Shown: piece after piece, positions 38,136 through 63,447 of the stretch
How the letters are laid out: each line of letters starts with the position of its first letter
Position numbering within the stretch: the stretch's first letter is position 1
Sequence record: LR756502.1
Reading direction: 5' to 3' (one strand)
Length of the DNA: 64,000 nt
The notes under the pieces: generated by a model
Told to the model about the DNA's origin: nothing
What the model saw: only the letters and a program-made list of their open reading frames with translations
Databases searched by the model: none
Made by a program: the position numbers and the translations under genes

Positions 38136-39035
38136 TTATATATTAAGTAGAATCTTTAGTGTATACTCCGATGTGTCTACATTATCATTGAATTTCCTAT
38201 CAAATCGAGATTGATCAAATATAACTTCCTTATAATCTATATCATGTAGTATAGATGGTAGTACGTCATCCAGTTTTGATTCTATTTCTCTAAGGTTAAA
38301 TACTCCAGTAGCCATACTATCGGAGTGTCCTCCAATGTTTATAGTGACTGATGGTTGATACATATCAAGGAATAGGTTAATATCATATTTTTTCTTTTTG
38401 GATATATCGATATCATATCCTCCTGATGTTTTTGTAATATTGTGATGTGGTTTGATATAGTTGTCAATATTAAAGTTTTGACATTGATATTTTTTATCTG
38501 TTACGAAACACTCATCTTTGCCTGTTCTTAGAAGAGCATTTGACCTCCAACCACCAATAAATAGAGTTGGTAATATCATTTCTTTTATTATGTGTATTAT
38601 TACTCTAAATTTATTAACTTCATTACACTTTGGTATGTATATGGATCCACTAAATTTCCTACTTAGTAAGCTGTTGTATTTTTCTATATCACCATAGAGA
38701 ACAGCGAGAGATGTATGCTTTTTCTTACCTTCTGGTATCTCATCATAGACATCATACATTCTATCATTTATGTAATCAGTATCTACTTTTTTAAGTGAGT
38801 TAAATATGTTCTCAACATGGTTTGATATTTTATCAAACCACCCATCACCAATGAAATGATCGGTCCACATTTTAATACTATTAATATTTACTTTTGATCC
38901 TTCTGGATTTGTCATCCATTCATAACTTTTTAAGTCTTCAGACCAATCGTATATAGAATAATCATGTTGATTACCATCAGGAATTTTTTTATCAGATTCC
39001 AAAAATAAGCTATATGTTTTAATCTTCATATTCAC
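38136..39035 (-). CDS. Hypothetical protein with capsid-targeting-like leader (MKIKTYSLFLES)
   Basis: ORF track; leader shared with neighbours. Confidence 0.65.
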   Translation of the reverse strand: MNMKIKTYSLFLESDKKIPDGNQHDYSIYDWSEDLKSYEWMTNPEGSKVNINSIKMWTDHFIGDGWFDKISNHVENIFNSLKKVDTDYINDRMYDVYDEIPEGKKKHTSLAVLYGDIEKYNSLLSRKFSGSIYIPKCNEVNKFRVIIHIIKEMILPTLFIGGWRSNALLRTGKDECFVTDKKYQCQNFNIDNYIKPHHNITKTSGGYDIDISKKKKYDINLFLDMYQPSVTINIGGHSDSMATGVFNLREIESKLDDVLPSILHDIDYKEVIFDQSRFDRKFNDNVDTSEYTLKILLNI

Positions 39036-39771
39036 TTTTCTTTAATTTGAATACTTCTATATCAACAAAGCAATAACCACCAGTACTACTACCCCTTGAC
39101 ATTATTAACCCATATCCCATCGATCTTAACTCTTTTTTTAATCCATCCGATAATTCATCATATATTTCACTATCTCTAGATGAAAACAATACAAGTTGTT
39201 GATTGTATTCTGAATATGACCTGATAGATAGTATTTTATTGTATCTATTGCCTATTATGCGATCTTGTAACTCATAATACTCATATTTAGAGTTGGTGGT
39301 AAAACTAAAAAAACAATTAACCATCCTATTTATATTTGATCTGGAGTCTACGATTTTAGCAAATGTCTTACACCTTTCAATACAGTCTTTTACCTGAATT
39401 GCAATCTCTCTTGATTCACCATTAGTATATATAACATTGAACAAGTCGCTATGTATCTTTACTGTTATTGATTTTTCAACTTCCTTTTCATACTGTCTAT
39501 ACTTTTTTTCGGTATAATTATTACTGATTCTATGATCATATAAATATCTTTCAAAATTTATATCAATATCCGGGAATTCGTATCCTATTTCTCTGAAAAT
39601 ATCTTCTATACTGGATATGGTTTCATCTGACTCCTTTTTGAATTGATCTCTTGATTCTATACCAATATCAGCTAGATGTTTTTCTATAACTTCAAGCACT
39701 TCTCCTTCTAACTCAACTTTTGTTAAGTCTTCTGTCTTTACTATAGCTTCGAAGTATTTAATGTATTTCAT
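39019..39771 (-). CDS. Hypothetical protein with leader MKYIKYFEA
   Basis: True start probably 39771 (1 nt after upstream stop) rather than 39792. Confidence 0.65.
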   Translation of the reverse strand: MKYIKYFEAIVKTEDLTKVELEGEVLEVIEKHLADIGIESRDQFKKESDETISSIEDIFREIGYEFPDIDINFERYLYDHRISNNYTEKKYRQYEKEVEKSITVKIHSDLFNVIYTNGESREIAIQVKDCIERCKTFAKIVDSRSNINRMVNCFFSFTTNSKYEYYELQDRIIGNRYNKILSIRSYSEYNQQLVLFSSRDSEIYDELSDGLKKELRSMGYGLIMSRGSSTGGYCFVDIEVFKLKKSEYED

Positions 39772-39772
39772 T

Positions 39773-40312
39773 CTAGAAATATATTTTCTCACCTTCTGGT
39801 GTTGAGTATTTTATCCTACCAATATCTTTAATTGTGTATTTATAATTTGGATTAGCATATTTCTTACCAGTGCCCTTTTTAACATAAGCTAGTGTTATGT
39901 GTGGGTGGTATGTTGGATATTGATCAGAGTTTGGTAATTTTTTTAACTCATCATGTAATTCCTGTAGAGCTCCATCTGGAACTACATTTAACTTAACAAC
40001 ATCAAATTCCTCATTTTCAAATACACCAACACCATCTATCTCAACATGTATATCTCCGTGAAAATTATCAAATATTGACTTAACTTCCTCTTTTGTTACT
40101 CCCTTGTTTAGACCATATAATATTGTTACATGTGGGTTTGTTTCAACTCCATGTGATGGATCTTCTGGTAGATAAACATCATTTGCATCTATTGATGATA
40201 CTAACTCATCCCAATTAGATATATTTAGCTCTATCATCACACATCCATATTGGTATAGATTGCCTGGTTTCTCCTTACTCTCTTTCATGAATTCTAAGTA
40301 TTTTTTAATCAT
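39773..40312 (-). CDS. 2H phosphoesterase (Acb1/T4 57B-like), leader MIKKYLEFMKES
   Basis: Two HxT motifs: PHVTILYG and YHPHITLAY. Confidence 0.8.
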   Translation of the reverse strand: MIKKYLEFMKESKEKPGNLYQYGCVMIELNISNWDELVSSIDANDVYLPEDPSHGVETNPHVTILYGLNKGVTKEEVKSIFDNFHGDIHVEIDGVGVFENEEFDVVKLNVVPDGALQELHDELKKLPNSDQYPTYHPHITLAYVKKGTGKKYANPNYKYTIKDIGRIKYSTPEGEKIYF

Positions 40313-40313
40313 A

Positions 40314-40697
40314 TTAATCTACTTTTTTAAAATCAAACTGTATGCTATATATATAGTTTCTTTTAAATAAATTTATAACCTTATTATAGACATTGCTGTT
40401 ATTGGAAATATGTTTCTGTTGGTATCTTTTACTATTGTTGTAGTGTGTAATCATATCACATGTGCCTGTGAATTGTATCTTCCATCTATCTTCCATCATG
40501 CTTAATAACTGTATTATAGACCCCTTTATATCTGATACCTCAAAAATCTCTCCTCCCTTATCTATAAAAACTGAAAGTTTTGTTCCATCCTCTATTACCT
40601 GTATATCAAATTCATCGTCTGATAAGTAAGCCAGTATTTCTTTGACTTCCGTTACTATATCATTTTTTATAGATTCAAATAATTTAATATACTTCAT
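40314..40697 (-). CDS. Hypothetical protein, leader MKYIKLFES
   Basis: 127-aa ORF, paralogous to 40697-41134. Confidence 0.65.
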   Translation of the reverse strand: MKYIKLFESIKNDIVTEVKEILAYLSDDEFDIQVIEDGTKLSVFIDKGGEIFEVSDIKGSIIQLLSMMEDRWKIQFTGTCDMITHYNNSKRYQQKHISNNSNVYNKVINLFKRNYIYSIQFDFKKVD

Positions 40698-41134
40698 TAA
40701 AGTATCTCATTTTTTATAAATTCTAACTCTAAACTAACTATATCTATATCTCTATCTATAAACCATATATACTCATCCATGTCTTTTATTCCATATTTAC
40801 CCCAACTGCTACTTGATGTCTGTGATGATATTGTTAGAATTCTCCATCTATCATCTATCATCTTGTATAGCCTTCCTAACTCATCTTTAATATATGATAA
40901 TTTGAATGTGTCAAGAGTAGTAGTTGGATCTTCCTTTTTATAGTTTGTAAATGGCTTTTTTATGAATACTACAAAGTGACTTGGCGGCAAAAAGGCATTT
41001 CTTGCCCCGTTTCTATGATTAACATCTATATCAACTACAAACCCATCATCCCTTAACTCTGATAGTATTTCACCTACTTCGGATATCAATTCATTTTTAT
41101 TGGATATTGATTCGAATGTCATAATATATTTCAT
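40697..41134 (-). CDS. Hypothetical protein, leader MKYIMTFES
   Basis: 145-aa ORF directly behind late-type motif. Confidence 0.65.
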   Translation of the reverse strand: MKYIMTFESISNKNELISEVGEILSELRDDGFVVDIDVNHRNGARNAFLPPSHFVVFIKKPFTNYKKEDPTTTLDTFKLSYIKDELGRLYKMIDDRWRILTISSQTSSSSWGKYGIKDMDEYIWFIDRDIDIVSLELEFIKNEIL

Positions 41135-41139
41135 CTAAG

Positions 41140-41147
41140 TATATATT
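41140..41147 (-). promoter_or_regulatory. Putative late promoter AATATATA
   Basis: 5 nt upstream of 41134, heading five leader-tagged genes. Confidence 0.5.
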
Positions 41148-41157
41148 TTAATTTTAT

Positions 41158-41188
41158 GTTGATAATATGAAAAAGATTTATACCTTTG
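41158..41188 (+). promoter_or_regulatory. Bacteroidota-type promoter GTTG-N19-TACCTTTG
   Basis: Matches -33/-7 consensus and spacing; upstream of 41208. Confidence 0.55.
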
Positions 41189-41207
41189 TATAAAATTATA
41201 TTTAATT

Positions 41208-41402
41208 ATGGCTAGAGAAAGTGATATTATTAAGTTGGAAAAGGAAATAAGAGCTAAAATGATGCAGATAAAAAACAAGAGCGTTACTCCAAAGGACTCT
41301 GGAATTGGTAAGATTATTAATCTTATGAAATCATTTGACGAGCCTCTATATGATAAGCTAATGAATGAGTACAAGAAAGTATTAGAAAGAATAAAAGATT
41401 AG
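41208..41402 (+). CDS. Small hypothetical protein
   Basis: 64-aa ORF with own promoter. Confidence 0.6.
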   Translation: MARESDIIKLEKEIRAKMMQIKNKSVTPKDSGIGKIINLMKSFDEPLYDKLMNEYKKVLERIKD

Positions 41403-41926
41403 ATTTTCTTACCATGGTCACCTTTTCTAAATGGTGATATTAAGTGCTTCAGATTCCAATTTGGAGTAAATGATTTGTTCTTTTTCTCAAAGTCCTCGTA
41501 TGATTCGATTCCAGTATCAACTGGGTTATGAATATAGGCAATATTTGCACCTTGTTTATTCATATCAGAAACTCTATCACCGATATCAGTTCCTTTTGAA
41601 AGCTTTCTTAGTTTCTTTAACTGATCCACTGTGTGTTGTCTAGGTAATGACTCATTCTTAGATCCGTTTGTTAATTCAATTGTACCATCATCATTAAACA
41701 TTGCGAACGATGTTTCATCAACAATTGCAACTTCTTTACCAACCAACTCAGGGTTTATATTATCTATACCAAATGATTTAACTTTTTTAATACCATCCTC
41801 ATCGATAACAAAGTCGAAAGAGTCTCCGTGATTATTAGCAATTAGAGCTTTAATTCTGCCTTTAACAGAGATAAATTCTGTTGCTCCTTTACCCATTGAT
41901 TTTAGTCTAGCTCTTACGATTCTCAT
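41399..41926 (-). CDS. Hypothetical protein
   Basis: 175-aa ORF behind TAATATATA (41931-41939). Confidence 0.6.
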   Translation of the reverse strand: MRIVRARLKSMGKGATEFISVKGRIKALIANNHGDSFDFVIDEDGIKKVKSFGIDNINPELVGKEVAIVDETSFAMFNDDGTIELTNGSKNESLPRQHTVDQLKKLRKLSKGTDIGDRVSDMNKQGANIAYIHNPVDTGIESYEDFEKKNKSFTPNWNLKHLISPFRKGDHGKKI

Positions 41927-41940
41927 AAACTATATATTAA

Positions 41941-41979: not shown

Positions 41980-42942
41980 TTAGAAATCCTCTGAGAGATT
42001 GTTAAAATCAACATCTCTATCTGATGCTTTTTGATATTCAGAAACTCTTTTCTCGAAGAAGTTGCTCTTAGATTGTAGTGATAACATATCCATAAAATCA
42101 AATGGGTTTTCTGATTTATAAACCTTAGAACAACCCAACTCAACTAACCAAAAGTCAGCTACATATTCAATATATTGTGCCATTAACTTAGCATTCATTC
42201 CTATTAGAGATACTGGTAAAGATTCTGTTATGAATTCTTTTTCAATTTCAACTGCTTCACAAATAATTTGTGTTATTCTTTCTGATGATACTTTATTTTG
42301 TACATACTTATTGTGTAATAAACATGCGAACATGCAATGTAATCCCTCATCTCTAGATATCAATTCATTGGAGAATCCTAATCCAGGCATTAATCCACGT
42401 TTCTTTAGCCAAAATATAGAACAGAATGATCCTGAGAAGAATATACCTTCGACTGCAGCAAATGCTACTAGCCTTTCTGCGAAATCATCCGAGCTAATCC
42501 ATTTAAGTGCCCAATCTGCCTTCTTCATAATTGATGGGTAGTTATCAATTGCGTGGAAAAGTTTGTCCTTTTCATCTGTGTCTTTTATATAAGTATCAAT
42601 TAGAAGAGAGTATGTTTCTGAGTGAACATTCTCTATTGCTATTTGGAATCCATAAAAACATTTTGCCTCTGGATACTGAACTTCTTTTAAGAAATTTTCA
42701 GCAAGATTCTCATTTACTATACCATCAGAAGCTGCAAAGAATGCTAATACCATTTTTATAAAATGTCTTTCATTATCATTTAGCTTATCTTCCCAATCTG
42801 TTAGATCTTGTGCAAGATCTATCTCTTCGGATGTCCAGAATGAATGTTCTGCTGTTTTGTACATTTCCCATATATCATTGTATTTTAGTGGGAATAATAC
42901 GAATCTGTCTCTGTTTTCCGTTAGTATGTGTTCTTTTTTCAT
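41980..42942 (-). CDS. nrdB: Ribonucleotide reductase class Ia beta subunit
   Basis: [57 protein letters not shown]. Confidence 0.95.
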
Positions 42943-43028: not shown

Positions 43029-43451
43029 TTGATAATGTCTAAGAATATAATAGATAAAATTATAGAGGCGTGTTTTGCTGGAAATATAGCATTATCTCAC
43101 AAATACTATACAGATAATATACTATCTAATTTGGATGTATATAATGTATTTTTTAATGTTTTGTCAAGTGAACCATTGATTAAAAATAAAAGAATTGAGT
43201 TTATCCTAGATGGGTTAAGTACACTTGATAAGGAAACTGTTCTTCTCGCCGCTATTGATGCTACAATGACAAACCTTGATATCGAACTATATTCACTACT
43301 TGTTGATGAGTTTAATGTAAACACATCACTATTTCAAATGAGGATTGCTAGTAATATGTTGAATAAAAGAAAGATTTTTCTAAATACTGATAGAACATAT
43401 GTTGAATTTATTAGAGAAATTAAATTAAGAAGTTTATTAGATGATAAGTAG
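43029..43451 (+). CDS. Hypothetical protein, C-terminal IREIKLRSLL
   Basis: 140-aa ORF. Confidence 0.6.
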   Translation: MIMSKNIIDKIIEACFAGNIALSHKYYTDNILSNLDVYNVFFNVLSSEPLIKNKRIEFILDGLSTLDKETVLLAAIDATMTNLDIELYSLLVDEFNVNTSLFQMRIASNMLNKRKIFLNTDRTYVEFIREIKLRSLLDDK

Positions 43452-45976: not shown

Positions 45977-47053
45977 ATGGACTTTAATGATGTTCTAATT
46001 ACACCTGCTGTAACCTCAACAATACGATCTAGAAGTGAGATAAACCCATACCAACTTTCTATCGGTGATACAAATTGGCTACCCATTATTGTATCACCAA
46101 TGGATACTGTTATTGACTTGAATAACTGGCAACTATTTCTGAATGAGAAGATGCCAATATGCTTTCCAAGAGGAATAAGACCATCTGATATTAAAGGTGA
46201 TGATTTTTTAGTTCTTAAGTGTTTTAGTAGTGTTATATTCTTCTCATATTCTCTAGATGAAACGTCTGATATGATTGAGTGGTTGGTAAATAACCCATCT
46301 CAAGATCTGGAATATAATATACTTATTGATATTGCCAATGGTCATATGCAACATATGGTTGATTCTATTAAAGAACTTCGTAAAAGAACAAAAGTTAAGA
46401 TAATGGTTGGTAATATTGCCAATCCTGATACCTATCGAATACTTTCACATGCTGGTGCTGACTTTATAAGAGTTGGTATTGGATTTGGTGGTGGGTGTTT
46501 AACCGCTATGAATACCGGAGTTGGATATTCAATGGCATCTCTTGTAAAAGAGTGTCGTGATATAAAGGATGATATTGAAAAGTGGGATAAGAAAGAGGGA
46601 GCTATGATAGTTGCTGATGGCGGATTTCGTGAATATTCTGATGTTATTAAAGCACTTGCTCTTGGTGCGGATTATGTTATGCTTGGATCTATGTTAAACA
46701 AGACACTTGAATCCGCTGGTGAGACATTCTGGAGTAATTGGGCCTTTACTATGAAAGTTCCACAGGGACTAGCTAATATTCTATGGAAAAGAAAGTATAC
46801 ACTTGAAAAGAAATTTAGAGGTATGTCCACTAAAGAAGTTCAGAAGAAATGGGGTAAAGCTAAACTAACAACATCAGAAGGTGTGGTTAGAATGAGAACA
46901 GTTAAATATACATTATCTGGATGGAGAGAAAATTTTGAAGACTATTTAAGATCTGCGATGTCTTATACAAATAGTAGAACTCTAAAAGACTTTATTGGTA
47001 ATGTTAAATGGACAGTTATAACCGAGAATTCATTCAATAGATTTAATAAATAG
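45977..47053 (+). CDS. GMP reductase / IMP dehydrogenase family
   Basis: DFNDVLITP, SPMDTV, IDIANGH, RVGIG.GGGCLT, IVADGG, ALGADYVMLGS, SEG. Confidence 0.85.
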   Translation: MDFNDVLITPAVTSTIRSRSEINPYQLSIGDTNWLPIIVSPMDTVIDLNNWQLFLNEKMPICFPRGIRPSDIKGDDFLVLKCFSSVIFFSYSLDETSDMIEWLVNNPSQDLEYNILIDIANGHMQHMVDSIKELRKRTKVKIMVGNIANPDTYRILSHAGADFIRVGIGFGGGCLTAMNTGVGYSMASLVKECRDIKDDIEKWDKKEGAMIVADGGFREYSDVIKALALGADYVMLGSMLNKTLESAGETFWSNWAFTMKVPQGLANILWKRKYTLEKKFRGMSTKEVQKKWGKAKLTTSEGVVRMRTVKYTLSGWRENFEDYLRSAMSYTNSRTLKDFIGNVKWTVITENSFNRFNK

Positions 47054-47761
47054 CTATATCCACTTACCTTTTGATGCAACTATTACTCTTTGGTTTTTCT
47101 CATCAAGTATAACATTAAATTTACCCTGTAGTGTTTTATTAATAATATCATAGATAGAGTCTAATCCGTACTTATCCACTTTCTGTGTTATTATTAATTT
47201 ATTACTCTCCTTCTTGATATTCATTATCTTACTCTGGTGTTGGGTTAATCTTTCTTCTGCATTTTCTATTCCTGTTGTTACTTTTAGTTTAGCACCTTTC
47301 ATATCTGATATCACTAATGATGGGTCTATGATATCAGATGGATGATATGTTCTAATACAAACTTCGTTATTTGTAATCTGTGTTATTTTGCTATTATATT
47401 CATATCCCTCTAACTTTGTTAATAACTCAACAATTTCCATAAAAAATTCCTTAGAAAAGTTAGAAATACCATATGTACCAACTCCTCTAACTATTTTAAA
47501 ATTATATCCTTGATAGAATTCTCTTTCTAGAATTTCTAGCTTTCTACCTGGTTGATTAAATGCTGAGTCGTAAATTTCAAAATTAATTTTATGACTGTAT
47601 AAACCTCCAATTGTTTCTGGTATAACCCATCCTAATTCAGTGAATTCAGCTAAGAAATCATGAATCTCATCAACCCTATTCCAATCTAACCTTTTAATTA
47701 GATCTTCTTTCCAGTGTGATGGTCCAGCTTCAAATATTTTATATGGTGATAGATGTTTCAT
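47054..47761 (-). CDS. Hypothetical protein, leader MKHLSPYKIFEA
   Basis: 235-aa ORF downstream of neck gene. Confidence 0.65.
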   Translation of the reverse strand: MKHLSPYKIFEAGPSHWKEDLIKRLDWNRVDEIHDFLAEFTELGWVIPETIGGLYSHKINFEIYDSAFNQPGRKLEILEREFYQGYNFKIVRGVGTYGISNFSKEFFMEIVELLTKLEGYEYNSKITQITNNEVCIRTYHPSDIIDPSLVISDMKGAKLKVTTGIENAEERLTQHQSKIMNIKKESNKLIITQKVDKYGLDSIYDIINKTLQGKFNVILDEKNQRVIVASKGKWI

Positions 47762-48639: not shown

Positions 48640-48837
48640 TCATTTGAGTAGGTTTTTAATCTTTCTTATTCTATCTTCATTTTTATCTACGTCTCCTTGG
48701 TATAACATATACCGTAACCAAATACCAGATGAGTATGTATATACGCTATTTGTCTTTCTATCATAATATGAATCACCCTCGACTGGATTATCTGGTCTAT
48801 TATCACCAAATTGATTTTTAGCTATATTTCTAAACAT
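48640..48837 (-). CDS. Small hypothetical protein, C-terminal [10 protein letters not shown]
   Basis: 65-aa ORF overlapping dnaJ end. Confidence 0.55.
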
Positions 48838-52694: not shown

Positions 52695-53723
52695 TTAGGG
52701 CATTCTTTCTCCTATACTGCGTTGTTTAATTTCGTCTAGTGACTCGGTAGTGAATTGTAAGTAAATCTTCCACACTAATATAGTTGTAATACCAACTTCG
52801 TCCTCATTTTCAAACCCTGTATTGATATTGGAATTTCTGCTTCCTGATACTACTCCATTACTCACTTCTTTCTGCATATCACTAAACATTCTATCTATAA
52901 ACTCTAGTGACAGTCCAGTACTAACTAATCTATTAGTATATCCTTGTTTTTTCCAATATTCTGGTTGAGTTATATATATTTTTTGATAGGCATTCATTTC
53001 TATTCCCTCATCTGACATCATATTTTTAATCCTATCAGATGTGTCTATAATTGTCGTTCTTAACTCATTAGACCACTCAATACCACGTTTAGGCATATCC
53101 CATTCTAATTCTACTGTTGCATGTTTTAGGTACAGATCAACATATGGCTTTATTTTAACTCCAAAGTCTTGTTCTAATTCAATGCATATATCGCTAATTA
53201 CTTGTTCTATATTTTTTTTAGTATCTACACTGTCGAACTTAGCAACCATTATTACTACGGGACATTCACCATTTTTTGAATCTATGTCCAGTCTTTCCCC
53301 ATTGTAATAGTCTCCCTTTTTAAGCTCATCCTTACTAATATAAATTACCTTTCTACCTATTACTCCACATACTGAATTAAAAGGTGTAGTTCCTTTATTT
53401 GAGTCTTCTACTAAATATACATTCCACTTACTAAAGAACATTGGTATCCTTAGATTTGATTTTGGTATTTGTTCGCTAGTTATTTTAGTTATATCATTTT
53501 TAATTTGACTAGGTATTCCTCCTCCTGAATTGGAAATTATTGTATCAAATCCTCTTTCTTTAGTAACTTTCTTTATTTCATTCCATCTAAAATTTAAAAG
53601 TGGATATATTCCCATTAATCTACCAATAGCTGATGCAATAAATCTTGGAACATTCAATAAAATTCTTTGATTTTTTGTTAGTTCCTCATTTATATGTTCG
53701 TTATATGATTGTATATGTCTCAT
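52695..53723 (-). CDS. Hypothetical protein, leader MRHIQSYNEHINEE
   Basis: 342-aa ORF. Confidence 0.65.
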   Translation of the reverse strand: MRHIQSYNEHINEELTKNQRILLNVPRFIASAIGRLMGIYPLLNFRWNEIKKVTKERGFDTIISNSGGGIPSQIKNDITKITSEQIPKSNLRIPMFFSKWNVYLVEDSNKGTTPFNSVCGVIGRKVIYISKDELKKGDYYNGERLDIDSKNGECPVVIMVAKFDSVDTKKNIEQVISDICIELEQDFGVKIKPYVDLYLKHATVELEWDMPKRGIEWSNELRTTIIDTSDRIKNMMSDEGIEMNAYQKIYITQPEYWKKQGYTNRLVSTGLSLEFIDRMFSDMQKEVSNGVVSGSRNSNINTGFENEDEVGITTILVWKIYLQFTTESLDEIKQRSIGERMP

Positions 53724-54163
53724 TTATTAGCAAAGTATAGTGATACACTATTAATTTTTTGTTCCTTTGGTAAATCCGATATGCTTTTATAGTAAACATA
53801 GTTTGGTATATCAACAACATAAACACACTCTATATCCAGCTTTAACTCTTCTTTTGAGTATGACTCTGCTTGTAGTAGAGTATCAAAAACATCCTTGATA
53901 TTGAAGTAGTCAAGTGATGGACCTTGTCTACCCTGCTTTATTTTATCAATATGTACTTCGGTTAGACTAATAGTATTATTCACATCATTGAATATAACCT
54001 CGGATGAATCTATTTTAGACTTATTTGTGAAATCTAACTTAACACAATTAACATTTTCTTTTACACGAACTCTTAATCCATCATCTTGAAGATAAGCGAA
54101 TAGATCCTTCATCCAATCAAAGTTATCATTTTCAAATATTTTATATTCTTTTAGATACTTCAT
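53720..54163 (-). CDS. Hypothetical protein, leader MKYLKEYKIFEN
   Basis: 147-aa ORF. Confidence 0.65.
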   Translation of the reverse strand: MKYLKEYKIFENDNFDWMKDLFAYLQDDGLRVRVKENVNCVKLDFTNKSKIDSSEVIFNDVNNTISLTEVHIDKIKQGRQGPSLDYFNIKDVFDTLLQAESYSKEELKLDIECVYVVDIPNYVYYKSISDLPKEQKINSVSLYFANK

Positions 54164-54842: not shown

Positions 54843-55265
54843 ATGATTACAGATAGTAAAATTTCAGTTATTCAGGAAAAGATTAAAAAAGCCATTGCTC
54901 AGATTGAGATTGATGAGAAAGTTAAAATTTCTTTTGGTAGATGTACTTATAATAAGGCGTTTTATAAAACTGGTATGCAGGTTACTACAACTGAAAAAAC
55001 AGAAGTTGTTAAAGATGTATATGCATCTATTTGTAGGCAACTTGGATTCACCCAAAACATAATTGGTATGAAGTTTGAGGGAACTAGTGGCATATATGAG
55101 ATTATTGATATAAAAACTCGTAATAGAAAATATCCAGTAATTGCTAGAGTTAATCTTAATGGTATAACTAAGCAATTTAAATACTCTGTTGCTGATATTA
55201 AAAAAAGAATCGGTGGTGATAAGGTAATTAATAGAAATGCTAACATTGAAAGATTAATAGGATAA
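54843..55265 (+). CDS. Hypothetical protein, C-terminal NRNANIERLI
   Basis: 140-aa ORF with KTRNRKYPV. Confidence 0.6.
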   Translation: MITDSKISVIQEKIKKAIAQIEIDEKVKISFGRCTYNKAFYKTGMQVTTTEKTEVVKDVYASICRQLGFTQNIIGMKFEGTSGIYEIIDIKTRNRKYPVIARVNLNGITKQFKYSVADIKKRIGGDKVINRNANIERLIG

Positions 55266-55545: not shown

Positions 55546-55929
55546 ATGAATATAAATGTTGTTGTAATTGGTAACCGTAGCTCTGATATTTGTAAAAGGC
55601 TATCAACTGACTTTGATTATACACTGATAAGTAGTAAATCAACTGATGTAATCTATGGTGAGTTTAAGAAGAAGATAGGACTTAATAAGTCTTATCTTAT
55701 CGATGGTTATCCTAATGACATTAACCAGGCAATTATTCTTGATCAAATGATTAATGTTCCTGTTATTATCTGGTTAACCCCATCAAAGTGCTCAGACTCA
55801 TTAAAGGATTGGTATGGTGATAGAATAGTTGAAATTGACTCCACTGATATAGAATCTATATACAAGGAGATAGTTGATACTATGTTTGAAACTGTTAAGG
55901 AGCCAAGGGATATAAGTGATATTATCTAA
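55546..55929 (+). CDS. Degenerate adenylate-kinase-like protein
   Basis: YLIDGYPNDINQA matches ADK LDG[FY]PR..Q; Walker A absent. Confidence 0.45.
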   Translation: MNINVVVIGNRSSDICKRLSTDFDYTLISSKSTDVIYGEFKKKIGLNKSYLIDGYPNDINQAIILDQMINVPVIIWLTPSKCSDSLKDWYGDRIVEIDSTDIESIYKEIVDTMFETVKEPRDISDII

Positions 55930-56687
55930 ACCCCTGATAGAAACATCTCTGATTCTTTAGCCCTTCTTGTTGCTAATCCAGGAAATTCTTTACTTACTTT
56001 AAAGTTCTTTATTGACTTTCCTGCATTTATGTAGTCCTTCTTTTTAAGATGTTGAAGGGCCTCCGCCTTTCTAAGTCCACCAACCCCAGTATTGTAAGCT
56101 ATTGATATTAAAGCATCATACATTGGTTGTGTTATTTTAACACCTAACTTCTTCCTGTCCCACTCTTTGAATATCCTCTTAACTCCATTCTCAATTACCT
56201 TTAGGTCTTTATTGAATATTTCATCAGCTTCTTCCTTAGATATAATTTCTCCTATTTTATACTTTGATGTTGATGGATCTTCAGCGTGACCCCATCCAAT
56301 ACTTATTTTACCATCACCAATGTTGTAAGCGGTTAATCTTAGTTTCTCATGTTCTTTAATACTGTCCTTACCTTCCTTAGATATACTAAATAGTTGTCCA
56401 GATTTGAACTTATCTTTCTTTACGTCTTTAAGAACATCAAGAGCAATCTCCTTTGTGTCGGAACTAGAGCTTGATATTATATCATACACATTATCAGCTG
56501 CTGATAATGTGAGCATTGATCCAATTAGATGTAATAGTATTTTCCTTTTGCTTTGGTTCGATAAGTTTTTAATTTTACTTAATGTCTTATCCCACATTGA
56601 CTTTATGTCCTCATTTATAGATGATTCTATGTATTCTATTATCTGTTCGCATATTTGATCCTCATTGAATGTTTTAATATATCTCAT
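55926..56687 (-). CDS. GH24 phage lysozyme with N-terminal extension (leader MRYIKTFNED)
   Basis: EHEKLRLTAY..GDG.ISIGWGH, TQPMYDALISIAYNTG, GLATRRAKE..MF. Confidence 0.85.
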   Translation of the reverse strand: MRYIKTFNEDQICEQIIEYIESSINEDIKSMWDKTLSKIKNLSNQSKRKILLHLIGSMLTLSAADNVYDIISSSSSDTKEIALDVLKDVKKDKFKSGQLFSISKEGKDSIKEHEKLRLTAYNIGDGKISIGWGHAEDPSTSKYKIGEIISKEEADEIFNKDLKVIENGVKRIFKEWDRKKLGVKITQPMYDALISIAYNTGVGGLRKAEALQHLKKKDYINAGKSIKNFKVSKEFPGLATRRAKESEMFLSGV

Positions 56688-56724
56688 AATCTATATATTT
56701 TTTTGTATATTTGTAAATTGAATT

Positions 56725-57255: not shown

Positions 57256-57693
57256 ATGAAATTGCATAGATATAACTCCTTTATAAATGAATCAGTTGAA
57301 GACAGACATCTTGATATAGATGATGTTAAAAACTTTTTTGCTGACTTTATGGATGAGTTTCCTTTGGGCTTTGAAGTTAAACAAGATGAATTTAGTATGC
57401 AAAGTTTTCGTCTTGATGGTATTCCAGGATACTTTAAAATAGAATCTCAATTGGCTGATTATATTTTAGTTAATGATATACTAAACTCTCATATATCCAA
57501 AGATATGTTAAGAGTAATAAAGAGTAGATTAATGGACTATGCCCCTATTTTAGATGGACATGAGTTTGAGTGGATATTAAGTTGTGGTGCAAGGAGTGAA
57601 TATGTTAGTAGAATTCGTGGTGAGCGAGTTGATGTTCCGGAGATAAAAGCTAGGATAGTAATATCCTGTAAGTTACAATATAAGAAAATATGA
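57256..57693 (+). CDS. Hypothetical protein, leader MKLHRYNSFINES
   Basis: 145-aa ORF. Confidence 0.65.
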   Translation: MKLHRYNSFINESVEDRHLDIDDVKNFFADFMDEFPLGFEVKQDEFSMQSFRLDGIPGYFKIESQLADYILVNDILNSHISKDMLRVIKSRLMDYAPILDGHEFEWILSCGARSEYVSRIRGERVDVPEIKARIVISCKLQYKKI

Positions 57694-57724
57694 AAAAATT
57701 ACATAGATATAACTCCTTTATAAA
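57265..57724 (+). repeat. Direct repeat of 23 nt CATAGATATAACTCCTTTATAAA at 57265-57287 and 57702-57724
   Basis: Identical DNA encoding the leaders of two adjacent unrelated proteins. Confidence 0.85.
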
Positions 57725-58961
57725 GGAGAGTTTAACCACACAAGAGGGAAGACATAGAATACCAACATATGAAGAGTGTGTTGAGATATGTTCTGGAGAA
57801 GAGCCATCATTTTATGAATCAAAGATGGTTGTTGATGGGTACAATTTGTCTGTTTTTAACTATCGTCTTGCAACGTATAACGATTTTGCTAACCCTATTC
57901 CAAGTAAACCAGATGTTAAGGCATATGAGATGCGTGGTCTTACATTTGTTTTTAATCAAGATGGTTCATTATTCAATAGATATATTTTATTGGAGAAATT
58001 CTTTAATATTAATCAGGTTCCTGAGTCTATGTACTCTATTGTTAAAGATTATAAAATTAAATTCGTTAATAATAAGGAAGATGGTTCTATTGCATCATTT
58101 ATAAAACTACCAAATGGTAAGATAGTTGGTAAATCAAAAATGGGATTTGATAATGATCAAGCTAATGGTATAAATAGAATTTATAAAACTAATCCAGATA
58201 TTAAGAAGTTTGTTGATTGGGCATTGGATAATGATTATGTTGCTGTTTTTGAATATGTTGCTCCACATAATCGCATCGTATTAAGATATTCAAACGAAGA
58301 GCTGATTTTACTTAGACTTAGAAATAATAAGACAGGTAGACACATTGATATAAGAGATCATTTAGATAAGATTGGTTCGATTAGAGTTGCTCCATTTGAA
58401 GATGACTTCAAAGATTTAGATGATCTACTTGAAGTTGTTGCTAAACAAGTTGATAAAGAGGGATGTATTGTTACTGCTACTGATGAAAATGGCAAAGACT
58501 TCTTCTTTAAGTTAAAAACACCTTGGTATATGGCTCTCCATGGGTTACTCACAAATGATATTTATACCGAACATACTATAATATCATATATTTTGGATGA
58601 TAAAATAGATGATATCCTTGGTCAGATACCGGAAGAAGAGGTCGAAGCTCATCAAAGAATAAATAAAATTATTGGAGTTGTTAGGAAGTCAATTTCCGAT
58701 AAAGTACAAGAGTTAGATAAGTCATATCAAATATTTATAAATATGGGTAGTGATAGAAAAGAATATGCTCTTAAATATAGAGGAAGTGAACCGAATTTTG
58801 GATATGTTATGGCAATGGCTAAAGGAATAGATCCTTATGAATTAGCTAAGGATTGGGTTAGAGATAACACTAAAAGATTGATGATAGCGAGAGATTTCTT
58901 AAAGAAGAGGGAACCATCACTATTCTTTCAAGACCCTGAAGAAAATGAAGATGATAACTAA
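57690..58961 (+). CDS. T4 Rnl1-type RNA ligase with leader MKKLHRYNSFIKES
   Basis: FNYRL, EMRGLTF, KFFN, KEDGS motif I, FEYV..HNRIV..Y, EGCIV, KLKTPWY..LH. Confidence 0.9.
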   Translation: MKKLHRYNSFIKESLTTQEGRHRIPTYEECVEICSGEEPSFYESKMVVDGYNLSVFNYRLATYNDFANPIPSKPDVKAYEMRGLTFVFNQDGSLFNRYILLEKFFNINQVPESMYSIVKDYKIKFVNNKEDGSIASFIKLPNGKIVGKSKMGFDNDQANGINRIYKTNPDIKKFVDWALDNDYVAVFEYVAPHNRIVLRYSNEELILLRLRNNKTGRHIDIRDHLDKIGSIRVAPFEDDFKDLDDLLEVVAKQVDKEGCIVTATDENGKDFFFKLKTPWYMALHGLLTNDIYTEHTIISYILDDKIDDILGQIPEEEVEAHQRINKIIGVVRKSISDKVQELDKSYQIFINMGSDRKEYALKYRGSEPNFGYVMAMAKGIDPYELAKDWVRDNTKRLMIARDFLKKREPSLFFQDPEENEDDN

Positions 58962-59742
58962 ATATAAATTATTTGAAAAGCTTAATAGTCGTGGGTCTAA
59001 ATCCTTGACTGAAGAAGAATTCAATCAAATATTAAAGACCAGTTGTAAAAATTGGGCTAAGTCAAAGACTTCTTTATATAGAGGTCAAGTTGATATGGGT
59101 CCTTATGTTTATGTTGATCCAATTGAAACAAAAAGAAAGTCAATTGACGATACCAACTTACATGTTGAATTAATTAGTAATCTACCTTGTTGGAAAAATT
59201 ATCCTAAATACTCATCATCTGTTATTGGTGTTTCTGATAATAAGTATATCGCTGATGGATATGGTGTATCATATGAAATTATACCATTTGATAATATTGA
59301 TATTGTTTTTTGTCCAGCTGCATCAATATGGCAATCATTTGATGATGGTGATGGTGGTTGGGGTGATACGGATACTATACATTTAACCCGTAGTTTCTTT
59401 GAATTACTTGATATAAATACTGATGTTTGGAAATCAACAGATGGACTAACAATTGAAGATAAATTAAAGGCAATTACTAACATTCCAGATCAAAAATTCA
59501 TTAAAATCTTCCACATAAATGAGGGAGATCATTTATTTTTGACACGAGCTTCTGAATATCTTAAAAAGAATAAAAATGAAATAACAGGAGAGGATTGTTA
59601 TGACTTTATCAATAACTATCTTTTTAATCCAGTTTATAGAGGATTTAAGACAGTTAAATATACTGCTGGATTTGATGAGCCAAGTAACAAGCAAATATGG
59701 ACTAATGGTCCAGTTTTGCTAATTTATAGAGAATTGGCTTAA
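58945..59742 (+). CDS. Hypothetical virion-type protein, leader MITKYKLFEK
   Basis: LYRG...RKS...YPK.SSS.I...YG..Y.I.P pattern. Confidence 0.6.
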   Translation: MKMITKYKLFEKLNSRGSKSLTEEEFNQILKTSCKNWAKSKTSLYRGQVDMGPYVYVDPIETKRKSIDDTNLHVELISNLPCWKNYPKYSSSVIGVSDNKYIADGYGVSYEIIPFDNIDIVFCPAASIWQSFDDGDGGWGDTDTIHLTRSFFELLDINTDVWKSTDGLTIEDKLKAITNIPDQKFIKIFHINEGDHLFLTRASEYLKKNKNEITGEDCYDFINNYLFNPVYRGFKTVKYTAGFDEPSNKQIWTNGPVLLIYRELA

Positions 59743-59760
59743 AAAATTAATATATAGAAT

Positions 59761-60018
59761 ATGAGAATAATAAAAAAGTATCAACAGTTTAACGAAGAAC
59801 TTAGAGTTCTTAGTGGATTCAAATGTCCAATTTGTAGAGGTGCTTTATATAGAACAGATGCTGGTGGTAACTCAGTAACCCTGCAATGTTCTTCTGATGA
59901 AGCTAAATTTTGGAACTTTCCTAGAGGAACTGAAGAGCAAAAGAAAGCACATGATCACTTTATGAAATCCACCACTAATATCTCTAATGAGGAGTGGCAA
60001 AAGGTTTTAAAGGGATGA
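59761..60018 (+). CDS. Zinc-ribbon protein, leader MRIIKKYQQFNEE
   Basis: CPICRG...QCS; TAATATATA at 59748-59756. Confidence 0.6.
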   Translation: MRIIKKYQQFNEELRVLSGFKCPICRGALYRTDAGGNSVTLQCSSDEAKFWNFPRGTEEQKKAHDHFMKSTTNISNEEWQKVLKG

Positions 60019-60164
60019 AAATAAAGAAATTTGATAAGTTCAAAAAAAGAAAAACAAGGATAAGTAAGGTATCCGATAATACTTATACTTGGAATCCTCT
60101 TTATAATCCAGGTAGTCCATCTCCAGGTACATCTACCCCAATGGTTAAAATTAAAATTGACTAA
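60015..60164 (+). CDS. 49-aa protein, leader MKIKKFDKF (not in ORF track)
   Basis: ATGA overlap with upstream stop; translated by hand. Confidence 0.5.
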   Translation: MKIKKFDKFKKRKTRISKVSDNTYTWNPLYNPGSPSPGTSTPMVKIKID

Positions 60165-60170
60165 CCTTTA

Positions 60171-60281: not shown

Positions 60282-62165
60282 ATGAAAGACATAATAATCG
60301 GAATTGACCTCGGAACAACTAATTCATGCGTTGCCGTTGTCGAAGGTGGTGAACCTATTGTAATCACAAACGCTGAGGGTAAAAGAACTACTCCATCAGT
60401 CGTTGGATTTACTGATAATGACCGAAAAGTTGGGGATCCAGCTAAACGTCAAGCAGTTACTAATCCAAAAAACACAGTGTACTCTATTAAACGATTTATC
60501 GGTAAAGACTTCTCAGTTTGTACTGATGAGGTTACAAGAGTACCATATGAAGTAGTTAAAGCCAATGGTAACGTACCAGCAGTTAGAATTGGTGATAGGA
60601 ACTATACCCCACAAGAGATATCAGCGATGATTCTTCAGAAAATGAAGAAAACGGCAGAAGATTTCTTAGGTCAAGAAGTAAAGAGAGCAGTTATAACTGT
60701 TCCTGCATACTTCGGTGATGCTGAAAGAACCGCAACAATAGAAGCAGGTGAGATTGCTGGACTTAAGGTCGAGCGTATAATCAACGAACCTACTGCAGCG
60801 GCTTTAGCATATGGTCTTGATAAGAAGAATCAGGATCAAAAGATTATCGTATATGACCTAGGTGGTGGTACATTCGATATATCAGTTCTTGAAATTGGTG
60901 ATGGTGTATTTGAAGTTAAATCTACTGATGGTGATACTCACTTGGGTGGTGATGACTTTGATAACACAATTATCACTTGGATGGTTGATGAGTTCAAGTC
61001 TGAACACTCTATGGATCTTTCAAAGGATCCAATGGCTCTTCAACGTCTTAAAGACGCAGCTGAAAAGGCTAAGATTGAACTTTCGTCAACCACACAGACA
61101 GAGATTAATCTACCCTACATCACTGCCAAAGATGGAGTTCCTTTGCACTTTGTTAAAACATTGTCAAAGGCTAAGTTTGACCAAATGACATCATTTTTAG
61201 TTGATAGGACTATTGCTTGTTGTAAGTCAGCTCTTAAAAGTGCTGGTGTAAAAGGTTCAGACATCGATGAAGTTATTCTTGTTGGTGGTTCTACAAGAAT
61301 TCCTTCAGTTCAAGAAGCGGTTGAGAAGTTTTTTGGTAAAAAGCCTAATAAATCTGTTAACCCTGATGAGGTCGTTGCACTTGGTGCAGCTATTCAAGGA
61401 GCAGTTTTAACTGGAACTATTACCGATGTATTACTTCTTGATGTTACTCCACTTTCCCTTGGTATCGAGACAATGGGTAGTGTGATGACTAGATTAATTG
61501 AGGCAAATACAACAATTCCGACCCGTAAGTCAGAAACGTTTTCAACAGCCTCAGATAATCAACCATCTGTTGAAATACACGTATTACAAGGTGAGCGACC
61601 AATGGCGAAGGACAACCGTTCACTTGGTAGATTCCATCTAGATGGAATTATGCCAGCACCACGTGGTATTCCACAAGTAGAGATATCACTAGATATTGAT
61701 GCTAATGGTATCTTATCCGTATCAGCGAAAGATAAAGCAACAGGTAAAGAAAACAAAATTAGAATTGAGGGTGGTTCCCAACTATCTAAGGAAGAAATTA
61801 ACAGAATGAAAGAAGAGGCTGAAGCAAATGCTGAATCTGATAAACTCGAAAGAGAGAAAGCAGATAAAGTTAATCAAGCTGATTCACTTATATTTCAAAC
61901 TGAAAAACAATTGAAAGAGTTTTCTGACAAATTGACAGATGATGATAAAAATAACCTACAAAGTGCATTGGAAGAATTGAAGAAAGCTCACTCTTCCAAG
62001 GAAATTGATCAAATTGATGAGACTTCAAAGAAGTTAAATGATACTTGGTCAGAGATAAGCACAAGGATGTATCAAGAAAGTGCATCGAATGATTCAAATA
62101 ATGCAACCAACGATAGTGGTAACGGTGGTGGTGTGGAAGACACTCCCTACGAGGAAGTGAAGTAA
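60282..62165 (+). CDS. dnaK: Chaperone DnaK (Hsp70)
   Basis: [48 protein letters not shown]. Confidence 0.97.
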
Positions 62166-62184
62166 AATTGAATTAAAGAGCATT

Positions 62185-62214
62185 AAAAAACCCAGTCATA
62201 TGACTGGGTTTTTT
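62185..62214. terminator. Bidirectional terminator between convergent genes
   Basis: AAAAAACCCAGTCATATGACTGGGTTTTTT perfect palindrome. Confidence 0.85.
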
Positions 62215-62223
62215 ATTTTAATT

Positions 62224-63447
62224 TTAGTCGTATCCTCCATCGGTATCTCGAAGTTCTCTATCGTGATCATTATCATAGTCATTTGTTAGTGTATCACTAT
62301 CTGTGTCTAAAAGGAAGAATGTATCAAGATATGGATAATATTCAAAATCTGACTTTTTTAACTCAATAGTCTCTGAGGCTGACCTAGAATCTGTGCCATT
62401 TTCCATTGTAAAATCATTATCAGAATCTTGGCTTCTTTTCCACCAAAATCCCTCTTTCTTACCAAACTCTTTGAATAAATCAACATCTGAATCTCTTAGA
62501 GTATATATTCTGTCCATTATTTTATATCCTCTTGTTGTTGTCCATAGAATACATCTTCCAATTATTTTATCTGATGTGTATTTTCCATTCTCGTCAATTT
62601 TTCCTGACTCATCATAAAGAATAACCATTTTACAGGTGTCCTTATTTTTGGTGTATATCTTGAACCATTTTTTAGGACCACCAGCCATACATGAGTTACC
62701 TAGAACACCACCTTCTCCAGCGTAATTTTTATTGTTATACCAGTGTGCTATATCATCACCCTCGACTATATCAAATCTTATTAATGCATTTGCCATTAAG
62801 TCATAAGTTGCTTTATATAAGTTAACAAACTCCTCAATATCTCTATCTATGAATGGTTCTTTGGCTGATGTTAGAATTGCTCTAACCAATCTACCTATTT
62901 TAATATTGTTTCTAGATGTTGACCATATTTGATTGGATACTGAATCGGCTCTCTCTAATGCCTCTTTATTTAGTACAGTTTCCTTATCACTCCATTCTTC
63001 AATTCCCTTAAACCAAACATATATCTTACCGCTTCTTGGACTAACTACCTCTTTAACTATTATACCCATTGTGTCTTCACTTGGTGACCATACATCTGTT
63101 TTTTTCTCATATCCAAGTAGTCTGTATATTGGATCATTTCCAGGTGAGTTTGTTAGGTATTTTTCCTCTTCAATAACTTTATATGTCTCTTGACTGTCTT
63201 TTTCTAACTCTTGTACTTTTCTATCAGGTGTAAAAGAAACAGTGTCCTTTTCACTACCAACATCAACGTAGTTGTGTTGTAGTGTAATATCCTTACTATA
63301 TAAATCTATAAGCTTCTTAGCAATTTGATTAGTTTTCATTTTAGATAAAAAGTTAATAAGCTTTTTTGAGTAAACTAATTTGGATTCCAGTAATAGATCA
63401 TATATAACCTTCTCAGAAATATAATCATCGTATTTTTTAATATTCAT
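62224..63447 (-). CDS. Conserved-type phage hypothetical protein, leader MNIKKYDDYISEK
   Basis: LGNSCM, IIGRCILW, MDRIY motifs; TAATATATA at 63470-63478. Confidence 0.65.
   Translation of the reverse strand: MNIKKYDDYISEKVIYDLLLESKLVYSKKLINFLSKMKTNQIAKKLIDLYSKDITLQHNYVDVGSEKDTVSFTPDRKVQELEKDSQETYKVIEEEKYLTNSPGNDPIYRLLGYEKKTDVWSPSEDTMGIIVKEVVSPRSGKIYVWFKGIEEWSDKETVLNKEALERADSVSNQIWSTSRNNIKIGRLVRAILTSAKEPFIDRDIEEFVNLYKATYDLMANALIRFDIVEGDDIAHWYNNKNYAGEGGVLGNSCMAGGPKKWFKIYTKNKDTCKMVILYDESGKIDENGKYTSDKIIGRCILWTTTRGYKIMDRIYTLRDSDVDLFKEFGKKEGFWWKRSQDSDNDFTMENGTDSRSASETIELKKSDFEYYPYLDTFFLLDTDSDTLTNDYDNDHDRELRDTDGGYD

Follow-up and report, generated by a model that had tools for sequence, protein, structure and literature searches.

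The internal proteins IPI, IPII and IPIII of bacteriophage T4 carry an N-terminal capsid targeting sequence (CTS) (Mullaney and Black, 1996, cited after the reviews PMC9026906 and PMC3012670). Residues 4 and 7 of this tag serve targeting, while residues 8 and 10 serve processing (PMC9026906). IPI* acts against a restriction enzyme, and the internal proteins in T-even phages form a diverse group of anti-restriction proteins with only the CTS in common (PMC3012670, PMC9026906). Few proteins are known to be handled in this way, T4 having a handful of tagged proteins and phage 201phi2-1 having 19 processed head proteins (PMC9026906). The proteases involved, of the S77 and S80 families, cut after Glu behind a short motif, and one such site lies close to the N-terminus of T4 gp21 itself (PMC9026906). 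Described here is a short N-terminal leader peptide found in a stretch of 64,000 nucleotides (nt; hereafter the window, to which coordinates refer unless a record is named), identical in its letters to positions 434001-498000 of sequence record LR756502.1. The leader is considered, with reasonable but not strong confidence, to be a T4-type capsid targeting sequence that has spread to about one-sixth of the genes in a huge T4-related phage and its relatives. This reading is the best supported because of the scale and distribution of the leader, its conservation at the peptide level, the head genes of the phage and a cross-check with the T4 tag.

The whole of LR756502.1 is an unannotated "uncultured phage" record of 642,428 bp. 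Its closest genomes in the phage collection are LR745206, LR756504, LR756501/03 and LR756500 (634, 636, 735 and 462 kb), and genomes of more than 634 kb, LR756502.1 among them, are reported to belong to the Mahaphage clade, for which Bacteroidetes hosts are predicted (PMC7162821). A simple custom gene caller (first ATG plus codon-usage scoring) yielded 938 genes across LR756502.1, with 91% of the sequence coding, and every genome-wide count given below uses these calls. The starting point was a pattern proposed in an earlier reading of the window from its letters alone (the sequence-only reading), M-[KR]-x(0-3)-[KHT]-[YF]-x-x-[FYHI]-x(0-2)-E. The 27 N-termini of LR756502.1 that match it were used to train a hidden Markov model (HMM) of the leader, with no T4 sequence in the training set and a main cut-off of at least 8 bits. 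Internal 22-mers given a leading Met, or shuffled N-termini, provided the background for the HMM.

Against an expectation of 0.4-0.9 matches to the pattern, the 27 found among 938 N-termini represent a strong enrichment. The HMM reaches at least 8 bits at 162 N-termini, about 17% of the proteome, where about 2 are expected, and at least 12 bits at 108 N-termini, where 0.1-0.3 are expected. Proteome-wide enrichment of the N-terminal motif, which the sequence-only reading had offered as a check, is therefore borne out by pattern and model alike, and the 16 tagged proteins counted in that reading prove too few, the tagged set extending to about 17% of the proteome and to a whole clade of uncultivated phages. 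Fifteen of the 16 N-termini that it quoted stand at the starts of open reading frames (ORFs) in 38136-63447, while the remaining one, "MKKFSKITES", occurs in no frame of the window. A by-product of AT-rich N-termini generally, in which case the motif would be no more frequent than in such N-termini at large, is ruled out by the shuffles, the internal controls and three AT-rich control phages.

The leader comprises 9-13 residues and consists of Met, Lys or Arg at position 2, an aliphatic residue at position 4, a pair of aromatic residues three apart, and an aliphatic or aromatic residue followed by any residue and Glu. It always begins at the initiator Met, and the conserved Glu lies mostly at residues 8-13 (a Glu is present within residues 6-16 in 154 of the 162 tagged proteins). 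Three main forms, M-K-[H/Y]-[L/I]-K-x-[Y/F]-K-[I/L]-F-E-S, M-K-H-L-K-K-[Y/F]-N-E-S and M-x-I-K-K-[Y/F]-x-x-F-[I/V]-N-E-[E/S], each far exceed their internal-sequence controls. The residue three before the Glu (P3) is Ile, Leu, Phe, Val or Tyr in 88 of 109 parsed leaders, and the residue following it (P1') is mostly Ser, Glu, Gly, Asn or Ala. The leader itself is charged and amphipathic. A Sec, Tat or lipoprotein signal was considered and rejected, a hydrophobic 17-mer starting at residues 9-45 being found in 6 of 162 tagged proteins vs. 82 of 776 untagged ones.

The closest match to the leader among described tags is that of T4 itself. When 479 first-ATG ORF starts from 150 kb of the T4 genome (NC_000866.4) were scored with the leader HMM, IPIII (11.5 bits) and IPII (10.9 bits), for which the tag has been defined by experiment, ranked first and second. 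IPI scored 6.6 bits, while gp67, gp68, gp21, gp22, gp23, gp24 and the other proteins checked scored 5.5 bits or less. The T4 IPII/IPIII tag as read has Lys2, Tyr4, Phe7, Ile8 and Glu10; the leader of an RNA ligase encoded in the window has Tyr7, Phe10, Ile11 and Glu13, which is the T4 spacing moved by three residues. Spacing of the type aromatic-x-x-aromatic-aliphatic-x-Glu occurs at 30 N-termini vs. 3.8 expected. The third-ranked T4 start is that of gp61.1, a hypothetical protein of 54 residues (10.8 bits; start 19130, minus strand, NC_000866.4), and because this score is close to those of IPII and IPIII, gp61.1 may be an unrecognised tag-bearing protein.

Like the T4 CTS, the leader would be a propeptide of about 10-19 residues at the extreme N-terminus, with Lys2, an aromatic pair three apart and an aliphatic-x-Glu ending; as in T4, it is carried by otherwise unrelated, fast-evolving proteins, and the phage possesses head genes of the gp20, gp21 and gp23 types. 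The two differ in several respects. About 162 proteins (17%) carry the leader in LR756502.1, as opposed to a handful in T4. Most leaders add 1-3 residues (Lys-His/Tyr-Leu/Ile-Lys) ahead of the aromatic pair, and the commonest endings are …K-I-F-E-S or …Y-N-E-S. The tagged proteins, as putative cargo, are for the most part acidic, with many enzymes and a few membrane proteins in their number, whereas the T4 internal proteins are described as basic (PMC9026906).

The T4-type head module is located at LR756502.1 222.5-229.2 kb and comprises a portal (phrog_213; T4 gp20 by phmmer, 1.6e-27), a 699-residue prohead protease and a capsid protein of Pfam family Gp23 (3.7e-28), with sheath and large terminase genes nearby. 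The sequence-only reading had called for a gp21-like protease, and this one answers the description: it matches phrog_207 (6e-28) and Pfam S80 (27.6 bits, cut-off 23.4), and both Peptidase_S80 and Peptidase_S77, the families of phiKZ gp175 and T4 gp21, match in 40 of 40 orthologues. Partners in LR756502.1 were found by phmmer for T4 gp20, gp17, gp18, gp32, gp43, gp41, gp4, gp5 and gp3. The capsid protein contains V-L-E20-N and I-N-E43-N, invariant in 56 orthologues, and the protease contains L-I-V-E8-N, invariant in 40. The leader ends in a motif of the kind that S77/S80-family proteases cut, and the pattern fits a predicted cleavage site behind the conserved Glu. Tagged genes flank the head module, and in the related loci that were inspected one of them retains its place immediately downstream of the gene for the capsid protein. 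Two proteins of 165 and 171 residues, encoded at LR756502.1 315773-316270(+) and 542908-543423(+), reproduce parts of the major capsid protein's N-terminal region and may be decoys or accessory head proteins.

Processing after Glu is also known from the phiKZ-like giant phages 201phi2-1, phiKZ and SPN3US, in which many head proteins are cut by a gp21-related protease; there too the protease belongs to Pfam S80, and paralogous ejection proteins share conserved N-termini. Their propeptides, however, mostly exceed 100 residues, with cleavage at Ser/Ala/Gly-x-Glu, whereas the leader has about 10 residues and an aliphatic or aromatic P3. The capsid protein of the present phage belongs instead to the Gp23 family, and 8-19 processed proteins in those phages compare with more than 100 tagged proteins in LR756502.1.

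The leader is widespread among related phages. All four relatives sampled, as 50-kb stretches, contain it (16 of 73, 12 of 42, 4 of 54 and 3 of 65 genes). Degenerate DNA patterns of the leader retrieved from IMG/VR more than 120 stretches among the matches listed, and 74 stretches; 550 of the 2119 ORFs around those matches carry the leader, and many of the contigs have in addition a capsid gene that shares 67-86% identity with that of LR756502.1. In 185,579 bacterial and archaeal species genomes the same DNA pattern was found in 2 contigs only, both from metagenome-assembled genomes, which rules out a feature of the host. The leader is absent from the sampled AT-rich Bacteroidetes phages with T4-type heads, namely Prevotella phage Lak-A2 (27% GC; 0 of 59-73 genes), Tenacibaculum phage PTm1 (0 of 24) and Chryseobacterium phage MA9V-2 (0 of 59). 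The nearest cultured phages by capsid protein, PAU, MA9V-1/2, MaF61, PTm1/5 and pT24, are distant at 24-28% identity. A full-text search of a literature library found no report of this leader, which is apparently undescribed. The orthologue of the untagged window gene 41399-41926 has a leader in LR745206, and because of this the tag appears to be gained or lost between close relatives.

Conservation of the leader begins abruptly at the ATG. A mobile regulatory cassette or recombination site was therefore rejected, only a short promoter-like motif at a fixed distance being conserved upstream. Synonymous codons vary at the conserved positions: Lys5 is encoded by AAA in 39 cases and AAG in 34, Glu by GAA in 22 and GAG in 15, Leu4 by four codons, and Ser12 by six, of both the TCN and AGY types. 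In 157 independent leaders from IMG/VR, none of them picked by the search patterns, third bases from codon 7 on agree with expectation, and substitutions within the leader are conservative (Lys/Arg, Leu/Ile/Val, Tyr/Phe). From these codons, conservation appears to act mainly at the level of the peptide. A modest synonymous bias is confined to codons 2-6. Codon 6 ends in A in about 80-85% of cases even though the amino acid varies (in LR756502.1 and at the IMG/VR loci), and codon 3 is in nearly every case a NAY codon, for His, Tyr or Asn, the C-ending ones standing at about twice expectation. Ile9 is encoded by ATA in 19 of 20 cases. The bias at codons 3 and 6 is consistent with a constraint at the nucleotide or tRNA level, typical of translation-start regions and added to the peptide signal.

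The upstream motif, [AT]ATATATA, is present within 35 nt of the start in 81 of the 93 tagged genes with an upstream spacer of more than 10 nt, vs. 130 of 431 untagged genes, and in 69 of those 93 it stands 3-9 nt from the ATG. Of the 83 tagged genes in which an exact AATATATA occurs within 80 nt, 58 have the motif, in its form T(T)AATATATA, ending 4-6 nt ahead of the ATG. Another 61 tagged genes lie inside tight arrays and lack such a motif, so that the proposal of a TATATA motif in front of each tagged unit holds statistically, and at a fixed position, but not gene by gene. The raw number of motifs in the window is not raised (17, chance 14.8 +/- 3.6); its non-random aspect is the fixed position and not the count. 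The same motif also stands upstream of structural genes, at a distance of 19-28 nt for those of the sheath, terminase, portal, protease and capsid protein, and of 5-8 nt for a tail-fibre gene and a gp5-like baseplate-hub gene. It is common to all structural genes identified, but late timing is not established by it, because a topoisomerase II gene has the same motif; late expression of the tagged genes is likely but not proven. The -7 box TAnnTTTG of Bacteroidetes hosts is rare before tagged genes, which suggests two promoter classes, with the tagged genes almost never of the host type. In the window, the host-type box precedes the untagged genes 60282-62165(+), 45977-47053(+), 43035-43451(+) and 54843-55265(+), which include DnaK and a GMP reductase/IMPDH-like gene.

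If the motif works as a -10 element, the tagged mRNAs would be leaderless or nearly so. The leader could then be an expression device for translation start on leaderless or Shine-Dalgarno-less mRNA in a Bacteroidetes host, with the peptide as a by-product or "ramp", and both the position of the motif 4-6 nt before the ATG in 58 of 83 genes and the synonymous bias of codons 2-6 (codon 6 A-ending, codon 3 C-ending, Ile9 ATA) would suit such a device. This explanation is quite improbable. Positions 7-12 are conserved as amino acids with synonymous sites free, substitutions are conservative at the protein level, other AT-rich Bacteroidetes phages manage without the leader, and the match to the T4 tag would be left unexplained. 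Nor is the leader simply a device of leaderless translation, because untagged structural genes share the close arrangement and the array-internal tagged genes keep the leader without a motif of their own; the tail-fibre, baseplate-hub and topoisomerase genes have a close promoter and no leader, and highly expressed structural genes likewise lack it.

The proteins behind the leader are diverse. After removal of the first 14 residues, the 162 tagged proteins fall into 148 BLAST groups, 134 of them singletons, and a single paralogous family is thereby ruled out. Individual tagged genes were found to encode a 2H/Acb1-like phosphoesterase, a phage lysozyme, an Rnl1-type RNA ligase, a nucleotidyltransferase of the CCA-adding type, and DHH-domain, ankyrin-repeat and PQ-loop membrane proteins, among others; for the families NUDIX, GNAT (two members), SET, HNH, primase and endonuclease VII, matches were obtained at the level of the whole set. 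No head or tail family appears in the tagged set among the matches listed. The tagged CCA-adding-type enzyme is encoded at LR756502.1 597869-599053.

Two conserved families illustrate how the leader is set apart from the protein that follows. Among 120 N-termini of RNA ligase orthologues the leader pattern is kept, while the stretch of 4-10 residues behind it differs in both length and sequence; an alignment of 58 of these orthologues shows Glu13 to be invariant and Tyr7 and Phe10 to be at least 90% conserved. T4 RnlA and similar RnlA proteins align to the tagged ligase from residue 27 only, and AlphaFold places residues 1-20 outside the folded domain with a predicted local distance difference test score (pLDDT) below 50. 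The catalytic domain begins about 20-25 residues in, both in this ligase and in the 2H enzyme. The second family, that of a 407-residue protein encoded in the window, has Tyr6, Glu12 and Glu21 invariant in 913 relatives. Its model has a mean pLDDT of 81.8 and a low-confidence N-terminus, with the leader below 50 and outside the fold. This 407-residue protein is the product of a clade-conserved core gene and has 8 BLAST-linked relatives within LR756502.1; a fold search with it gave no significant PDB match (best E-value 0.017, partial coverage).

The shared N-terminus might alternatively be a functionless remnant of one expanded gene family. Tagged genes do stand in tandem arrays, and a second motif, …I.DIL..L.DDGF at about residues 20-45, recurs in a subset of their products. 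Such a remnant, however, would hardly be found on folds as unrelated as those of lysozyme, Rnl1, 2H, the CCA-adding enzyme and PQ-loop proteins, with NUDIX and GNAT also in the set, or on 134 of 162 trimmed proteins that have no BLAST relative in the genome. In the two conserved families, moreover, the Tyr and Glu of the leader vary no more than residues of the protein core do, even though the linker next to them drifts. A remnant of this kind deserves hardly any credence.

Within the window the tagged genes are confined to one part. In 38136-63447, 13 of 43 called genes reach 8 bits, and two further genes score 7.0 and 7.8, while none of the 41 genes in 1-38031 reaches 8 bits, those of the sugar/glycan cluster included. 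The tagged genes, the associated promoter-like motifs and the untagged genes that give their context are as follows.

38136-39029, minus strand: tagged protein of 297 residues, leader MKIKTYSLFLES, 20.5 bits; without Pfam family; last gene of a five-gene tagged array.
39019-39771, minus strand: tagged protein of 250 residues, leader MKYIKYFEA, 8.2 bits.
39773-40312, minus strand: tagged 2H phosphoesterase (2'-5' RNA ligase / Acb1-like) of 179 residues, leader MIKKYLEFMKES, 9.7 bits.
40314-40697, minus strand: tagged protein of 127 residues, leader MKYIKLFES, 8.7 bits, followed by the second motif ..I.EIL..L.DD.F.
40697-41134, minus strand: tagged protein of 145 residues, leader MKYIMTFES, 12.6 bits; opens the array, with a promoter-like motif 5 nt upstream.
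41140-41148, minus strand: promoter-like motif AAATATATA; its end lies 5 nt ahead of the ATG at 41134.
47054-47761, minus strand: tagged protein of 235 residues, leader MKHLSPYKIFEA, 16.4 bits.
52695-53723, minus strand: tagged protein of 342 residues, leader MRHIQSYNEHINEE, 16.4 bits.
53720-54163, minus strand: tagged protein of 147 residues, leader MKYLKEYKIFEN, 18.2 bits.
55926-56687, minus strand: tagged phage lysozyme of 253 residues, leader MRYIKTFNED, 13.2 bits; PF00959 4.3e-23, domain at residues 111-245.
56692-56700, minus strand: promoter-like motif AAATATATA, ending 4 nt before the lysozyme ATG at 56687.
57256-57693, plus strand: tagged protein of 145 residues, leader MKLHRYNSFINES, 11.7 bits.
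57690-58961, plus strand: tagged T4 Rnl1-type RNA ligase of 423 residues, leader MKKLHRYNSFIKES, 7.0 bits, slightly under the cut-off; PF09511 1.7e-20.
58945-59742, plus strand: tagged protein of 265 residues (263 from the second ATG, 58951), leader M(KM)ITKYKLFEK, 21.9 bits.
59748-59756, plus strand: promoter-like motif TAATATATA; its end lies 4 nt ahead of the ATG at 59761.
59761-60018, plus strand: tagged protein of 85 residues, leader MRIIKKYQQFNEE, 24.9 bits.
60015-60164, plus strand: small ORF of 49 residues, MKIKKFDKF, a borderline leader without Glu, 7.8 bits.
62224-63447, minus strand: tagged protein of 407 residues, leader MNIKKYDDYISEK, 11.5 bits, followed by a second L-L-E-S site at residues 19-22.
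37069-38031, minus strand: untagged gp32-like protein that binds single-strand DNA and marks a relationship to T4.
41980-42942, minus strand: untagged ribonucleotide reductase small chain.
48830-49891 and 49919-50428, minus strand: untagged DnaJ and GrpE, by domain match.
60282-62165, plus strand: untagged DnaK (Hsp70), with the Bacteroidetes host-type -7 box TAnnTTTG 41 nt upstream.

Domain matches thus confirm the three enzymes that the sequence-only reading had named as tagged, the T4 Rnl1-type RNA ligase, the 2H phosphoesterase/Acb1-like protein and the phage lysozyme. Its statement that glycan, chaperone and replication genes lack the tag also stands for the window, where the sugar/glycan cluster, DnaK, DnaJ, GrpE, the ribonucleotide reductase small chain and the gp32-like protein are all untagged.

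Several genes of the window merit additional comment. The 2H phosphoesterase matches PF13563 (2e-11) and PF23474 (1.6e-6), and comparison with orthologues gives a layout of leader, short variable linker and domain; its LR745206.1 orthologue (stretch 7257-8573(-)) is a 438-residue fusion with an additional C-terminal part. The LR745206 orthologue of the 297-residue protein keeps the leader at its N-terminus and has an additional N-terminal domain of about 120 residues behind it. A family search with the 145-residue protein 40697-41134 matched only itself and one close relative. The second motif, in the form …I.[DE]IL..L.DDGF, is present in a subset of tagged proteins, for example 40314-40697(-), 40697-41134(-) and 53720-54163(-), and because it recurs, a small N-terminal domain behind the leader may be shared by part of the tagged set. 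An untagged RNA ligase of family PF09414 at 51747-52250(+) lies close to the tagged Rnl1-type ligase. In the untagged part of the window, a weakly T4 gp3-like protein (tail sheath stabiliser; phmmer E=6e-4) at 32406-33014(-) adjoins a gene at 33021-34898(-) for a conserved 625-residue protein without assigned family; the promoter-like motif stands 21 nt upstream of this probable virion gene. The PQ-loop (SemiSWEET-like) protein at LR756502.1 56658-57272(+) consists of leader, then N-E-E-V-x-W-R-K, then a hydrophobic segment, and the layout leader, NEE.xW[KR] and hydrophobic stretch is common to several other tagged proteins.

According to the capsid-targeting reading, the leader would dock a protein onto the scaffolding core during prohead assembly, the docking partner being likely the long C-terminal part of the 699-residue protease-scaffold protein. 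The S77/S80-family prohead protease would then cut behind the conserved Glu, and the mature protein would remain in the head with the DNA and enter the next host cell alongside it. The tagged proteins would in that case be packaged, cleaved, present in the virion and injected, and might serve in counter-defence. Their number would include many small, fast-evolving acidic proteins together with the Rnl1-type ligase, the CCA-adding enzyme and the 2H/Acb1-like phosphoesterase, as well as proteins with NUDIX, GNAT, SET, DHH and lysozyme domains. The T4 head holds about 1000 internal protein molecules (PMC3012670), and because simple scaling from this figure suggests that a 642-kb capsid could hold tens of copies each of 160 proteins, capacity would be no barrier.

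A number of observations weigh against this reading. The 162 or more tagged proteins far exceed any known case. The commonest leader forms (…Y-K-I-F-E-S and …Y-N-E-S) differ in register from the T4 tag, and no match was obtained for the protease against PDB sequences, either as a single sequence or as a 40-member profile. The mature tagged proteins are acidic (median isoelectric point 5.1 vs. 6.0, p ~3e-10). A PQ-loop multi-span membrane protein bears a good leader (15.5 bits), and in about 6-9 tagged proteins the leader is followed by a hydrophobic segment. PHROG matches to DNA primase and HNH endonucleases, which are not evident head cargo, occur in the tagged set, possibly with weak leaders. 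Inner cleavage-type motifs are depleted in tagged proteins in the expected direction, but weakly (observed/expected 0.78-0.82 vs. 1.15-1.17 in untagged ones), and controls shift alike. The motif shared with the topoisomerase II gene belongs with these points, as does the failure to find a cultured leader-bearing relative (PTm1 and MA9V-2, the two sampled, are both without it). For membrane segments behind a leader there is a precedent, because the ejection protein gp47 of SPN3US has a propeptide followed by a transmembrane segment (PMC5694885).

The tag could be derived from a CTS and yet mark only a minority of true cargo, the remaining proteins using the N-terminus in another recognition role, for example as a protease-substrate mark that serves as a cytoplasmic timer or activator, or for recognition by the phage DnaK/DnaJ/GrpE or some other hub. 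The very large tagged number (162 of 938), the tagged membrane proteins, the primase and HNH matches and the acidity of the mature parts all speak for such a division. The DnaK-DnaJ-GrpE set is encoded complete in the window, among the tagged genes, and the leader is a basic-flanked hydrophobic patch. Hsp70s bind basic-flanked hydrophobic patches. A second receptor, on the other hand, has given no positive sign; the prohead route is favoured by the likeness to the T4 tag, by the motif that ends in Glu and by the head genes of T4 type, and head capacity would suffice by the scaling from T4. This division is considered unlikely, though less so than an expression device. Because of the membrane proteins, the acidic cargo and the large tagged number, not all tagged proteins are likely to be head cargo. 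The analogy put forward in the sequence-only reading is partly supported: it holds up in the head module, the Glu-ending motif, the first and second ranks of IPIII and IPII and the promoter-like motif common to structural genes, but the tag is not confined to plausible cargo. The stronger claim, that most of the approximately 160 tagged proteins of this phage, one of the largest known, are packed into the head by one T4-like tag and delivered with the DNA, and that the same applies in hundreds of related phages, can be entertained but falls somewhat short of being probable.

The arrays of tagged genes resemble the hypervariable internal-protein loci of the T-even phages, which are likewise arrays of small diverging proteins in which the N-terminal tag alone is conserved (PMC3012670, PMC9026906). 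An anti-defence role is known for those loci, whereas here it is hinted at by a few domain matches: the presence of an Acb1-like 2H protein, a tRNA-repair-type RNA ligase, CCA-adding enzymes, and NUDIX and DHH proteins in the set suggests such a role.

If the tag works as in T4, an N-terminal sequence rule would predict the injected payload of a clade of uncultivated huge phages. The purpose of the hundreds of extra genes in phage genomes of 0.5-0.7 Mb would thereby be addressed, and hundreds of candidate host-takeover or anti-defence proteins would be catalogued. The diversity of head cargo would exceed any described by an order of magnitude, and the T4 capsid targeting mechanism would be ancient and kept across very distant T4 relatives. 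If instead the tag does otherwise, a clade-wide signal on 17% of proteins would constitute an undescribed sorting or recognition system. Should most of the tagged proteins be delivered with the DNA, huge phages would begin infection with a large, ready toolbox of enzymes and fast-evolving small proteins.

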